A stretch of DNA of 63,686 nt, the filler included, from Hyphochytrium catenoides (lineage: Eukaryota; Protista; Hyphochytriomycota): NCBI GenBank assembly GCA_900088475.1. It is 11 parts of 11 records of this genome, joined end to end, with 100 filler letters (N's around TTAATTAATTAA, not from the genome) between each part and the next. Parts side by side here need not be neighbours in the genome. Positions count along the whole stretch, not along the records: positions 49,556 to 55,036 come from FLMG01003405.1; 10 more parts are not named here. One strand, given 5' to 3'. Positions 49,556 to 55,036 of the stretch are shown here, in pieces (positions within the stretch are counted from its first letter, which is position 1; each line of letters begins with the position of its first letter). A program made the translations under genes and the position numbers. The notes below the pieces were generated by a model. It had not been told where the DNA came from and searched no databases. It was given only the letters and a program-made list of their open reading frames with translations.

Positions 49556-51467
49556 TATAGAAATGCAGTGTAGAACCTTCGTCGTACCCATGGGATCGCA
49601 CCCGCGCCAAGGATCCCAAAGCAGATGAGAAGGAGTGTGCCAGCCAGCCCGTTAAGCTCTAGTGCCCTTGTGGACACCAGGACAGCGCCGCCAGGGAAGC
49701 TGTCCACCAGATAAGCAATCAACAATGCTATTCCATGCACCGAGCTCAGAAGTATCGCAGAAGTCCCTAACAGTCGATGGAAGAGAAGTGCCCGATCCCG
49801 TCCGAGGCCGAGAAATCTCAAGAAAATCCCAAGACGAGGGGCCGGAAGTGCTAGAAGAGCCAAAGGCAGAAAAGCGACATATCCAAGAGCTCTTGCCCAT
49901 GGCACTGCGGCACCATAAGGGTGCGGGATTCTCCGAAAGGACTCCCATTGCCATAAGAACCAGACAACCAAAGTCGCGATGAACAGTAGCAGCAAAAGGA
50001 AACTGCCCCATGAAAGCTGCCACAGAACGTCAACTGGAGTTAGAAGCAAGGAGGACACGAAAGATGACGCGATCGGTGGAGGAGCAGGTATCACTAGAGA
50101 ATGGTAGAGCCAGTGCCGGATCCTGTTTGACGGATTCTTTATCTGGTGAAGCACCAGAGGTCCAAGGATACCTAACAAGACTAGCAGGATTGCTAATGCG
50201 ATGGAAGCTTTGTTAAGCTTGTCTAACGTTGGGTACACCGAAGCTTCAGATACCGTGCCCGCAAAAGACAATGGCTGTGGGAGTGTAGTTGGCACGGCAT
50301 CCAACGCTGTTGCCTGGAGGCCTAGAGATACAGTTCCCGTCGATGCCACCGCGTTAACGCTGCTAAATCGTGGACTTTTAGGGCTCATGTGATTCAGAGC
50401 CATAACTTTGACAATGACCTGCTCTCCTGGCCTAAGGTCTGAGATGACGGCCTCGTTCCCTTGAAACTTTGGCAGAGACGTCACAAGAAAGGTCTCTCCT
50501 GTCGCAAGGTATGTGACGGAGATGTTGAAGAGACATATGCACGCCTCTAAAGGGGAAGGCAGAGACCACGACAGCTGTACTGAAGACGAGCCAATACCGT
50601 CGACTGATAGCAGAGGTGCCGTTGGGGGCTGGAATCGACAGGAAGCTCGCGTTGTGGCGCTGGTGCCATGTCCAGGAGAGGTGATGTCGGTGACGTACTC
50701 CGGCGTCTGGTCCATGTTCCAAAGGCAGCAGGGATCTCCCAGCTCGTCTCCATTGGTCTTTCCATCTCCGTCTGAGTCCTACGCGGGTCAAGGGTGGAGC
50801 AAAGGGTGAGCATTGTGTCCCCTCCAGATACAGATCGACAGGTAAGGGAGAAGAGAAGCAAAAGAAAGAGAGAGGGGAGAGAGAGAGAGTGAACCATTTG
50901 TCATCGACGTGGTCAGTGAAAATTGAAGCAGAAGAAATGAGGCGCCTCACTCATCATCATGATCACACAAAGTTGAGCACACACCTGAAGGCAGAGCTGC
51001 GTGGACCAGCCCTTGTCTACCGGTCCAGATGGACGCAGTTCTCCAAAGACAAACATCCCACGCTCGTCACCATCTTCGTCTTTGAAAGCGTCTCCGAAGC
51101 TGTTGGTATCTCCAGTTCTGCAGTCTGGATGACCAAAGGCACCACATGGCCCAGACCAGCAGTCAGCATCGCTAGGGCAAGTCACTCTCTCAGCGTTGGG
51201 CAGGTACTTCAGATATTCTCTGTATGCATTGGCGCCAATGATGAAGCCTCCTCTCCTATCATGAGACCAAAGTAATCTGTTGAGCAGGGATGACGAGGAG
51301 GGAAACGCATCTCCGGGGCCGTTGGTAGAGAGAGACGGCAAGAGGAGAGAGAGAAAGCTGTCTTCCGCGCTCAGCGTCAGGAGTAAGACCGTCGCAAGGC
51401 AAAGCCTTCGTCTTCCTGCTGCAAAAGCCATCGAAGTCAACGTAGGAGAATGCGGTCTTTTTGGCAT
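49556..51467 (-). CDS. Signal peptide + temptin-like domain + FN3 + ferric reductase-like transmembrane domain fusion, 3' part cut by contig end
   Basis: Exon 1 (51467-50985) and exon 2 (50778-49556) are joined by a phase-0 GT-AG intron (50779-50984). Spliced: AYREYLKYLPNA...FGH...NSFGDAF...WSTQLCLQ/DSDGDGKTNGDELGDPCCLW...ITSPG; then PPTAP...SVQLSWSLP...ISDLRPG...VKVMALN (FN3); then TM helices with ARALG, LPAPR, FHRLLG-x9-H and WVRRRFY. Confidence 0.9.
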
Positions 51468-53656
51468 CGCTCAGGCAGTGAGAAAGTGATCACTCTGTTA
51501 TAGACCTAGGCCGGTCGACGAAAGACGAGATCTTCTTGAAGACAGCGGCAGCAGAAGAGACGAGCGTCGGACCCCAAGTAATGGTAAACCAATGGGACTG
51601 GGCAGGCGTCTTCCTGCTGCAGGCCAAGGGGAATCTCTTCTTCGAAAGATCAAGTTGGGAAGAAAGAGAGGGAAAGGAGGAAAAGAGATAATGAGAGGCT
51701 AGAGGAGGAGTTTCTCTGGGTGCCCGCGACTCCTGAAAAGCTCGCAGGACATGTCAGACGCCACGGGACAGAGAGAAACTGAAACTTGAAGCGTGAGACC
51801 TTTATAATAATGGAGCGAGCAATGCAAGCGTGCTACATTAAATATTAGCAGCTCAACAGCGTACTGTCTTCTCCTTCCTATCCATCACTTCTCCCCTTCT
51901 CCTCTGGCAGTCTGTCTCTCTCCTCTCTTCTCTCTCTCTTCTCTCTCTCTTCTCTCTCTCTTTCTCTGTCTCTTTTTAGAGATACAACCTCTCTCCACTT
52001 CTCCACGTTGCTTTCTTGAGCGCCAGCTGGTTCCTCTTGCAAGTCCGCTTTCTCGTCCTTGAAGTCCTCTGGTCTTGCAATCTTCCCTCACCTTCTCCTT
52101 TGTTCCTCTTCCTCATCCCTTCTTCGCGCACCACTGATGATGACGTTCAACAGAGCACGCAAGCAACTTTCTAATGATCGCTCTTCTCACTACCTCGTTT
52201 CTAGGACGTTAGTTCTACTAATGGCGACACCAGACAGACGAACGAGGAGAGGGCGGGAGGAGGAAAAAACAAGGCAACCAAGGCAAGCAAGGCGGCTGGA
52301 GGGCTTGAGGCAGCAGCCAGCAGGGCGTCGCTGCTGATGGTTGGCTCAGTAGACATGGTGCGGTATACAGACGTGCAGCTGAACCACCAGACATGGCGGA
52401 TGGATCGTTTCCTCTTCCCTTTCTCTCTTTCTCTGTCTCACATCTCTCTTCTTTCTCTCGTTCTCTATCCACCTCTATAATAAGTGAAAGCCATTCTTTC
52501 CTGACACTCTTTCTCGTGACCTCTTTCTGTCTCCTTCTATATCTCTTCAAGCCGAGTCTGTCTCACGGACGCTTTGCGCTTGTCATGCTAAATATATGGG
52601 AATTGTGCAACTCTCCATATCTCATCACCCTTATGGTCTCTGCCAGCTGGTTCTTGCAACTACATGCTTCCTCGAAACCTTACTTGTCTCTCACTGCCAT
52701 CTGTATCGCACGGAAATATAGCTACTGTTACTGAACTGCATATCTAGTTTTTACTCTGTCTGTACTGATAATACCGATCATGTCACACCTTGTCCCGCAT
52801 TCTTATAAGGCCACAACCACATCACTCCGCCTTCTCTCCTCTGCAGTGCAGCGTCCAATGGTTGGGCTTGCTGATGCAGGGAAGGCGTAGACCTCGCCCA
52901 GTTTTGGTCCTAAGTAGGACTGCGGTGGAGGTGCGATCGCAAAGGCTGCTTCAGCAAATGACGGCGGAGGGTTTGGTATGATGAGAATGAAGCAGCAGAA
53001 GCAGGTGGAGGAAGATCCGAGCCTTGTAAGCTATTCCTTTGCCATGATGATTGTAACGTCTTCCTTCACTCTACAACGACAGTAGCGGATGGCAGGCATC
53101 TTTGATTGTCTTCCTCTGAGAGAGAGACTAACCTAAAGATAAGGCGGCTAGCCTCCTTTGTCATCATCTAGTGCTTCCGATCTCTGGAGTTGCTGCTCCT
53201 CCTCTGCTCAAGATTAGTACCTAGAGGTACGACCCAGAGGCGAGAAGAAACACCCAGAGGTGATGATACACCTGAGATCAAGGAGATAGGAACAACTACC
53301 GCATGCGATGGCCATCATACCTCAAGGAACGGGGTTGGAATGACACCTCATCATAATTTTGTTCTTCTTAGTAATCTCTGATCAGTTCCAAGAGCCGGGG
53401 CCCGTTGTGGATGATCTGAGAGGCAGGGAGGCAGCGGCATAGCTCTCATCAGTATAAAAAGTGGCGGACCAGCTAGGGATCTGATTGAGAGGACCAGCCG
53501 TGAAGAGAGACTAATAAATGCGAAGGCTGCTTGCGATAGCAAGAGATAGTTTGTGACTGGCCACGGAGGGCGTCCGTGATGAACCCACCTTTATAAATGC
53601 ATCAGTAAGAAGGCAGCCAGGCATGCGAGGAGTCTCGTGGTCTACGCAACGAGAGG

Positions 53657-54264
53657 ATGAGGAGAAGTAAGAGAGTAAAGACTAATGCCGGTCACGTGTC
53701 CGACCCGTCTGATACGATCCGGCTAGAAGACAAGGAGAGACCGCTTCTCCATATGGAGGTCCTTCACAATGAAGAAAAGCAGCAATTCTTGCTACTCGTT
53801 CACGCGAAGGCCGAGGCACGAGCCAACGGCCAGCGAAAGAGGAGTTTCGGGGCGGCGACCTGCTATTTAACGTACAGGTACGAGCTGCACTTCCCACCAC
53901 TAGACACACGCCAGAACAGTTCCTCATGCTACGATGTATGTGTCTGCGGGAAGTGTACAAAGAGAACGCGAGGAGCTGGTACTAGAACACACGTTTGTGC
54001 CAAAAGCGCTTAGAGGGAAGAGAGCGGCTGAGCGCCTGTGCCACGCAGCTTTTGATTATGCAGTCGAACAAGGTCAGAAGGTTCATTTTCACATCTATCA
54101 GCCTACTTGGCCTGGGCAAAATCAGGGTAGTGACGACGGTCTGTTACTCTTCCTGCTAATCAAAAGGAATGCGAGTGCGCCCAGTTTGCAGCTATATCTC
54201 CGCTACGTACCTACAACGACACCCAGAGAGGAGGGCGATCTGCACTGAGGAGGATGAAGGTTGA
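53657..54264 (+). CDS. Small GNAT acetyltransferase, NATD1/YjdJ-like
   Basis: Three exons: HNEEKQQFLL...CYLTY / LEHTFVPKALRGKRAAERLCHAAFDYAVEQG / MRVRPVCSYISATYLQRHPE. Contains the HT-x-VP...RG-x and P-x-CSY motifs of this family. Both inferred acceptors are AAG. Confidence 0.88.
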
Positions 54265-54657
54265 TGGCGACAACCTACAGTTCCTACTCAAGGTCAATAA
54301 TATGGGCCGAAGACCTCGAAGTGGAAACATCTTAAGCTCTATCTCATGCCTTTCCTCCAGATCAAAGTGACTTGCTTCTACAGGCAGTTTGCGCCCTCTG
54401 CGAAAGATCATTATAGCCAAACACCCGGTCCAGTGCAGACTGGAGCATGACTAGCGCAATGGGCCTTATGCTGGGCAACTTTGGATTAGCAGGGCGGCCC
54501 CAAGAGCAGACCCCATACATCGTCTTTGTCCGAGATCGGGGTAGTGTCCATTGGTCCAAGAAGCAGCCCACTCTAGGGAAGCAGCTCTCATAACCTCTGC
54601 GTCGCCCTGTTCGCTTCTATTTGTTGTTTGTACTATTGCCGTGGCTCAAGCGCTTCA

Positions 54658-55036
54658 TCACTTCTCAAAGCTTGGGAGGCCATATAAAGAATATATCCCT
54701 TCCCGCTCTCCTGTGGCGCTTCGTTGAGCGCTTCGAAACTTGGTCCATCTCTGCAAGTCCAATGATGCTCCAGTCTCTTCTGCCTTCTGGCCCTCGTCTC
54801 CCCCCGTCACTGGCTCTTGAACTTCTAACCAGTCGTGAAAGAACCCATTACGCTCCACATATTGAGAGCCAGTGACGGAGTTTAGAGGCAAGATGTCTAA
54901 AGACGCCAGTACGGATCCTCCAGCCCAAGAGAGAAGGTTCGGGGCGAAAGGGAGCGGGATAATACGAAGTCGAGAAGAGAGAGGTCGGAGGTTGGTATAT
55001 CTAGGATGGGAGCTCAGGAGATCTACCATCCCTTGC
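54658..55036 (-). CDS. ACTR10: Actin-related protein 10 (dynactin Arp11), last exon only
   Basis: HPRYTNLRPLSSRLRIIPLPFAPNLLSWAGGSVLASL...SVTGSQY...HDW: actin-fold C-terminal W-x-GGS motif with the Arp11-type ending. Confidence 0.72.

Follow-up and report, generated by a model that had tools for sequence, protein, structure and literature searches.

Introduction

Enzymes built on a ferric-reductase domain (FRD), such as FRE, FRO, NOX and DUOX, play a central part in the uptake of iron and copper and in signalling by reactive oxygen species (ROS), and the function of the extracellular domains that have been added to FRD enzymes is a live question. Here we describe a gene of the protist Hyphochytrium catenoides (assembly GCA_900088475.1) whose product carries a temptin domain and a probable fibronectin type III (FN3) domain ahead of an FRD core. 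The gene lies in record FLMG01003405.1, which makes up positions 49,556 to 55,036 of the 63,686-nucleotide stretch of DNA that was analysed (the window, 11 parts joined end to end), and all positions given below count along the window.

In overall plan, DUOX1 and DUOX2 resemble the Hyphochytrium protein taken together with its homologs, in that all have a signal peptide, an ectodomain, an extra transmembrane (TM) helix, a cytosolic segment, a bis-heme core of six TM helices, and domains for flavin adenine dinucleotide (FAD) and nicotinamide adenine dinucleotide phosphate (NADPH). However, the ectodomain of DUOX is a peroxidase-homology domain, whereas that of the Hyphochytrium protein is temptin plus FN3; moreover, the cytosolic linker of the latter, of about 40 amino acids (aa), is without EF-hands, and the His-119/Thr-178 signature of NOX is absent. 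Yeast FRE1 and Arabidopsis FRO2 have the same core of Ferric_reduct, FAD_binding_8 and NAD_binding_6, a TM3 histidine pair 14 apart and no His-119, but the family described here differs from them in its large N-terminal ectodomain, in the extra helix (TM0) and in the TM5 histidine pair of the homologs, which is 13 apart as in NOX2; the TM5 pair of FRE1 is reportedly 14 apart. The DOMON-b561 ferric-chelate reductases of the CYBDOM/FRRS1 type similarly place an extracellular accessory domain on a bis-heme transmembrane electron carrier, although their b561 is driven by ascorbate, whereas the FRD core has, in the homologs, its own flavin dehydrogenase.

The temptin domain itself, with its DSDGDG Ca2+ motif, is common to Aplysia temptin (Q7Z0T3), the mollusc temptin-like proteins and the family of the Hyphochytrium protein; the mollusc temptins are small secreted pheromone or shell-matrix proteins, whereas here temptin forms the tip of a membrane redox enzyme. 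DOMON is a recognised heme- or sugar-binding electron-transfer module, and we know of no cofactor for temptin. Fusions of DOMON to FRE in Naegleria, Albugo and Phytophthora (Zhang et al. 2013, PMC3591440) are likewise FRE-type reductases of protists, without the NOX signature and with an N-terminal ectodomain, and differ in that this ectodomain is DOMON rather than temptin. The same 2013 catalogue of FRD architectures (PMC3591440) includes DOMON, peroxidase, EF-hand and other additions; as far as it was consulted, temptin is not among them.

Results and discussion

A spliced gene joins temptin to a ferric reductase

The locus is a genuine two-exon eukaryotic gene on the minus strand (Table 1). 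The translation of exon 1 ends ...GWSTQLCLQ, with GTGTGTGC directly after it, while the 3′ end of the intron reads ...CGCGTAG and exon 2 starts with DSDGDGKTNGDELGDPCC, so that in the predicted spliced form ...CTTCAG is joined to GACTCAGAC. The frame of exon 2 opens DSDGDGKTNGDELGDPCCLWNMDQ... and meets no stop through its 407 codons; the spliced product of 568 aa is likewise stop-free, and retention of the intron would give an in-frame stop 23 codons past exon 1. Two ORFs (open reading frames) had been proposed to splice in phase here by the first-pass annotation of this stretch, and the predicted splice is secure on three independent homology arguments, because a split Pfam domain is collinear over the junction, homologs run through it uninterrupted, and a family motif is restored by it without an indel. 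Specifically, the Temptin_C profile (PF24784) matches exon 1 with positions 2-50 (22.2 bits) and exon 2 with positions 62-97 (41.7 bits, cutoff 27), the second match being collinear with the first, and a family hidden Markov model (HMM) scores the spliced domain at 142.5 bits over residues 77-205, which bears out the earlier call of a complete temptin-like domain. Residues 161/162 are crossed by single HMMER domain alignments to dozens of homologs, including P0004 (query 77-568, 137 bits), P0152 (79-568) and P0026 (76-568), and the spliced query scores higher than exon 2 alone. Finally, in the MAFFT alignment, the family motif W-x3-C-x2-D|SDGDG is restored at the junction with zero indels.

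The product follows the order given in Table 1, in which the predicted signal peptide agrees with the earlier annotation. For the segment beyond temptin, the one FN3 domain claimed previously is most likely a true FN3: the Pfam fn3 score of 23 bits lies under the cutoff of 25, but the protein matches the EphA2 FN3 (E 1.1e-3), the family profile matches many solved FN3 domains, titin and fibronectin among them, and the corresponding region of a model of homolog P0005 matches the DCC FN3 with a template-modelling score of 0.85. The two TM helices that had been listed separately from the reductase proved to be of different kinds: the first, TM0, does precede the core and carries the chain from the outside into the cytosol, whereas the second is TM1 of the core itself. 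A motif directly after TM0, (D/N)P-x-S-x2-RR-x3-H, is conserved throughout the family (consensus DPxSxxRRAxxH in alignment A1 of 12 complete homologs) and reads NPSNRIRHWLYH in the Hyphochytrium protein (50100-50142, residues ~374-387).

The architecture defines a reductase family

An exhaustive HMMER search with exon 2 against 1.84 billion representatives gave 501 matches; a word-indexed protein search with the same query returned a weak match to a Lymnaea temptin only. Temptin and the FRD occur together in 42 fetched proteins, always with temptin on the N-terminal side; at 50% identity these proteins fall into about 30 clusters. By Pfam, the complete homologs (~700-1085 aa) consist of Temptin_C, often fn3, and then Ferric_reduct, FAD_binding_8 and NAD_binding_6. 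Their named sources are the euglenid Ploeotia vitrea, the red alga Galdieria phlegrea (without FN3) and the glaucophyte Cyanophora paradoxa (two paralogs), the remaining members being from metagenome contigs that are either unlabelled or labelled 'predicted ferric reductase'. No ESM Atlas cluster of at least 50 members has the temptin-reductase architecture, and a feature search of the Protein Atlas gave generic FN3 clusters only. The Hyphochytrium protein sits on a long, unresolved branch of the family tree, and no relative shares more than 31% identity with it.

The literature searched holds no link between temptin and a reductase and no citation of PF24784. The architecture had been put forward as undescribed, and in that literature it is; it is not singular, however, given the number of clusters in which it recurs. 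It is thus present in databases yet undescribed in the searched literature, and represents a variant of the theme of an FRD core with an extracellular accessory domain. Temptin, so far familiar only through the pheromones and shells of molluscs, now proves to head protist and algal reductases of about 30 clusters. This offers the domain a biochemical context that can be tested, and it delineates a reductase subfamily that has yet to be studied; for some of the organisms that carry it, namely Cyanophora and Galdieria, sequence resources exist. The family is weightier than the Hyphochytrium locus, since this copy is truncated and very divergent.

The core reads as a reductase rather than a canonical ROS-producing oxidase

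The Ferric_reduct profile (PF01794) matches residues 298-407 of exon 2 at 50.6 bits against a cutoff of 28; both this and the temptin profile thus exceed their Pfam gathering scores. The previously noted heme histidine pair, H495 and H509, lies 14 apart in TM3 within FHRLLGTSAILLSSVH and is invariant in the family. RRRFY had been read just before the contig break, and indeed RRRFYTAFL closes the sequence there, three residues short of the first TM5 histidine of the family. In alignment A1, all four heme histidines are invariant (i/i+14 and i/i+13; H422/H436 and H498/H511 of P0004), as is GGIGITP, while the HP motif for FAD and the C-terminal ...E-x-F show little or no variation. The AlphaFold model of P0005 (predicted local distance difference test (pLDDT) 73, predicted template-modelling score (pTM) 0.65) has seven TM helices and matches NOX2 (E 4.5e-19), DUOX1 (E about 1e-17) and NOX5.

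The positions of NOX2 His-119 and Thr-178 have been used to split NOX from presumptive metalloreductases (Zhang et al. 2013, PMC3591440). We located the first of these as the outer TM3 histidine + 4, and the second through the Thr-178-Gly-179 dipeptide in TM4. None of the 21 aligned members, the Hyphochytrium protein included, has a histidine at the His-119 position, where the HGIAL of the latter places Leu. At the Thr-178 position threonine is missing from 19 of the 21 and present in two, while the glycine is conserved; the Hyphochytrium protein has Ala-Gly (LAG), as do most members. Judged by this signature from the literature, the members read as reductases and not as canonical ROS oxidases.

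The alternative is that these proteins are ROS-making NADPH oxidases in which superoxide is formed from O2 at the outer heme, and the temptin and FN3 domains sense extracellular Ca2+ or a ligand, or handle the product, much as the peroxidase-homology domain does in DUOX. This would accord with the best solved-structure matches, which are NOX2, DUOX1 and NOX5, with the TM5 histidine spacing of 13 and a C-terminal ...ETF like that of NOX, and with the parallel to DUOX in the topology of ectodomain and TM0; furthermore, ROS production is considered likely for some 'preNOX' proteins that have no His-119 (Zhang et al. 2013). Nevertheless, we consider an oxidase unlikely given the signature counts above, and Pfam scans of the Hyphochytrium protein and its homologs turned up neither cytosolic EF-hands nor any other regulatory module of NOX. 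The ligand-gated ROS output suggested by the first-pass annotation is therefore disfavoured, since the His-119/Thr-178 signature is absent.

The temptin head probably binds calcium

An alignment of 42 temptin domains gave P14, H38, D68, D70, D72, E79, G81 and P104 as invariant columns and, as invariant or near-invariant features, P-N, G-H, W, C, DxDxDG, E, G-D, C-C-x-W and P. The Hyphochytrium domain, which has eight cysteines, holds P90-N91, G112-H113, W154, C159, D162/D164/D166-G167, E173, G175-D176 and C178-C179-x-W181. An AlphaFold model of the domain from homolog P0005 (residues 26-145; pLDDT 90.9, pTM 0.85) superposes on Aplysia temptin Q7Z0T3 with template-modelling scores of 0.78/0.75 at 39% identity, and neither Foldseek against the PDB nor a wide VIA-align search found a solved structural analogue of the fold.

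A DxDxDG loop is typical of Ca2+ sites. The core of the temptin profile, W..C..DxDGDGxTNGDELGD, lines up with the first EF-hand loop of calmodulin (E 7e-4 to 0.03), and DSDGDGKTNGDE fits the 12-residue EF-hand loop (ligands at positions 1, 3, 5 and 12; Gly at 6) except for a Thr at the hydrophobic position 8. A PROSITE-type EF-hand pattern accordingly fails on DSDGDGKTNGDE in its strict form and matches it in a form relaxed at position 8. The loop is single, within a disulfide-rich domain, and has no paired EF-hand; weak TSP3_bac matches are in line with the EF-hand-like reading, and the snail literature likewise assigns DSDXD as a Ca2+ site. The acidic patch is thus most likely a Ca2+ site, which is more probable than a redox metal because the acidic motif corresponds to an EF-hand-like DxDxDG loop. 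The domain has only one invariant histidine and no invariant Met or Tyr, and the even number of cysteines in a secreted domain makes disulfides likely. With a single invariant histidine and paired cysteines, a copper or iron centre within temptin is not indicated by the sequences.

Temptin is the membrane-distal tip of the protein, with FN3 and a ~54-residue stalk between it and the membrane, and where DOMON is also present it is DOMON that is membrane-proximal. Since temptin is the distal module, this layout suits a head for binding or targeting more than a site that accepts electrons directly.

These features bear directly on an earlier suggestion that the acidic, His- and Cys-containing ectodomain may bind a metal, a metal chelate or a ligand and be served by the reductase. 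If this were a redox-metal site, temptin itself would use its acidic, His and Cys residues to bind redox-active iron or copper, or a chelate, and the outer heme would reduce it directly, either as the terminal acceptor or for hand-off to uptake. The recurrence of Temptin_C with electron-requiring enzymes, including a bacterial cluster with a MopE copper-binding motif, points in this direction, as does the one invariant histidine. However, an EF-hand-type acidic cluster, a lone histidine unaccompanied by invariant Met or Tyr, an even cysteine count and a location distal to the stalk, and even to DOMON, all argue otherwise, and we regard a redox-metal head as distinctly unlikely.

A proposed mechanism

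We consider it fairly probable that these proteins are transmembrane reductases with a Ca2+-stabilised temptin head for binding or targeting, and that their acceptor is something other than O2. By analogy with the complete homologs, cytosolic NAD(P)H would feed electrons into FAD, and two b-type hemes would carry them across the membrane to an extracellular acceptor; the Hyphochytrium copy is presumed to have the corresponding cofactors and dehydrogenase domains. O2 would be a less likely acceptor than a metal ion, a chelated metal or some further extracellular oxidant, because the family is without the oxygen-site residues of ROS-producing NOX. The temptin domain, stapled by disulfides and bearing its EF-hand-like Ca2+ loop, would be held off the membrane by FN3 and the flexible stalk, with TM0 anchoring the ectodomain in a DUOX-style topology. 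In this way the head might bring the reductase to a substrate, the matrix or a partner, and would not itself be a redox centre.

Several points weigh against this proposal. The invariant temptin histidine (of GH) is left without a role in the scheme. TM5-TM6 and the FAD/NADPH domains fall past the end of the contig, and this copy is possibly truncated or divergent. The NOX-like TM5 spacing (13) and ...ETF C-terminus are joined by the best PDB sequence match of the family profile, which is NOX5 at 133 bits, and ROS production is still argued for some His-119-less 'preNOX' proteins (Zhang et al. 2013, PMC3591440). Furthermore, the first-pass annotation called for RNA confirmation of the intron at 50779-50984, and two run searches, with the reads placed on the locus, yielded no RNA joint over it, so that the splice rests on homology. 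The sole contig from the RNA library is 219 nucleotides (nt) long and lies inside exon 2 (50424-50642, 97% identity).

Temptin accompanies other redox enzymes

Temptin_C is also found with redox partners of other kinds. Homologs P0101 (Cavostelium apophysatum) and P0056 have the order Temptin_C-FN3-FN3-DOMON-cytochrome b561, and P0136, of 1943 aa, combines Temptin_C and DOMON with Ferric_reduct, FAD and NAD domains; in all three, temptin is distal to DOMON. Temptin_C is N-terminal on copper type II ascorbate-dependent, DBH-like and PHM-like monooxygenases of molluscs and protists, and occurs with Lipid_desat (PF10520) in a haptophyte-labelled ESM Atlas cluster and with the MopE copper-binding motif (PF11617) in a cluster from Myxococcota. 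In all of these redox proteins temptin forms the N-terminal, distal tip. It also stands beside EGF_CA repeats and bacterial Ig-like adhesin domains. One temptin-only mollusc cluster of the ESM Atlas carries the automatic name 'Ferric-chelate reductase'.

Our qualitative impression is that Temptin_C is biased towards electron-requiring enzymes, and a redox-linked role is suggested by the way it repeatedly heads redox enzymes. The coupling of the ectodomain to transmembrane electron transfer, proposed earlier, thus gains from the presence of Temptin_C on several unrelated redox enzymes, although the distal position of the domain is less suited to a direct acceptor. More tentatively, Temptin_C could serve electron-transfer and oxygen-activating enzymes in general, as their accessory module outside the cell, across distant eukaryotes, a generalisation that we hold to be possible but doubtful. 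If it were true, the 'pheromone' temptins of molluscs would have descended, as free-standing proteins, from a domain that partnered redox enzymes or delivered substrate, and the Hyphochytrium protein would be a self-contained surface redox machine whose Ca2+-dependent head takes hold of the acceptor, of a metal chelate or of a partner protein.

Allelic variation and integrity of the gene

In each of the DNA runs X2 and X3, two contigs of similar depth, about 6% apart (18/291 positions), were present at 50282-50572 and 51362-51700, a finding that points to a highly heterozygous diploid, to two strains or to recent paralogs. Four variants of the RNA-library contig recur in the second haplotype. 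Across the haplotypes and other strain variants the frame stays open, and the changes, once adjacent ones are merged, comprise about 20 synonymous and 15 non-synonymous ones, a pattern consistent with that of a functional gene. A contig of run X2 reaches 280 nt past the contig edge.

The most conserved stretch of temptin (DSDGDGKTNGDELGDPCC-W) is encoded in exon 2, directly after the AG acceptor and upstream of the first ATG of that ORF, and exon 2 is therefore not an independent gene. Although junction-spanning RNA is missing and the exon-2 ORF as listed begins at an internal ATG, it is very improbable that the fusion is an annotation illusion made up of a secreted temptin gene and a reductase gene starting at Met183, or a decaying pseudogene, in view of that placement of the conserved core, the collinearity of homologs through the junction without an indel, the same fusion in about 30 clusters, many on intronless contigs, and a frame kept in both haplotypes with synonymous changes in excess.

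Table 1. Features of the temptin-reductase gene of H. catenoides and of its predicted product (positions in the window).
Feature	Positions	Strand	Residues	Basis or remark
Exon 1	50985..51467	(-)		161 codons; ATG at 51467, alternative ATG at 51431
Intron	50779..50984	(-)		GT-AG, 206 nt, phase 0
Exon 2	49558..50778	(-)		407 codons, open up to contig edge; gene truncated there
Predicted signal peptide	to ~51366	(-)	~13-34	hydropathy and RRR n-region
Spacer		(-)	35-76	~40 aa, between signal peptide and temptin domain
Temptin domain, N-terminal half	from 51239, exon 1	(-)	from 77	Pfam and family HMM
Temptin domain, C-terminal half	50647..50778	(-)	162-205	Pfam and family HMM
EF-hand-like DxDxDG loop DSDGDGKTNGDE	50743..50778	(-)	162-173	first 12 codons of exon 2
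FN3 domain (most likely)	50374..50625	(-)	~213-296	Pfam score just under cutoff, solved-FN3 matches, beta-sandwich of homolog model
Ser/Thr/Pro/Ala-rich stalk	50212..50373	(-)	~297-350	~54 residues; sequence composition
TM0, extra helix	50143..50211	(-)	~351-373	equivalent to helix 272-297 of homolog model
Cytosolic linker	50017..50142	(-)	374-415	~40 aa; carries juxtamembrane motif NPSNRIRHWLYH
Ferric-reductase domain, TM1-TM4	49558..50016	(-)	416-568	Pfam, family alignment
Heme-ligand codons	49777-49779; 49735-49737	(-)	His495; His509	TM3

Surroundings of the gene

Scans of the contig with NCBIfam, Rfam and a tRNA search gave no match. An ORF at 53934-54248 (+), possibly together with 53657-54013 (+), matches the GNAT-type Acetyltransf_CG profile (PF14542, 39.2 bits). 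It has the look of an adjacent gene, with the second ORF possibly an upstream exon or the result of a frameshift, and had no homolog in the word-indexed protein search. Another ORF, at 54658-55029 (-), has a middle part, ...IIPLPFAPNLLSWAGGSVLASL..., that is weakly like the C-terminal end of actin and actin-related proteins (Pfam Actin, E 0.046), and would run on past the right contig edge. Upstream of the temptin-reductase gene there are a (TC)n microsatellite at 51911-51974 and intergenic, CT-rich pyrimidine tracts of low complexity at ~51860-52130 and 52400-52560, and a CT-rich tract is present in the intron as well.

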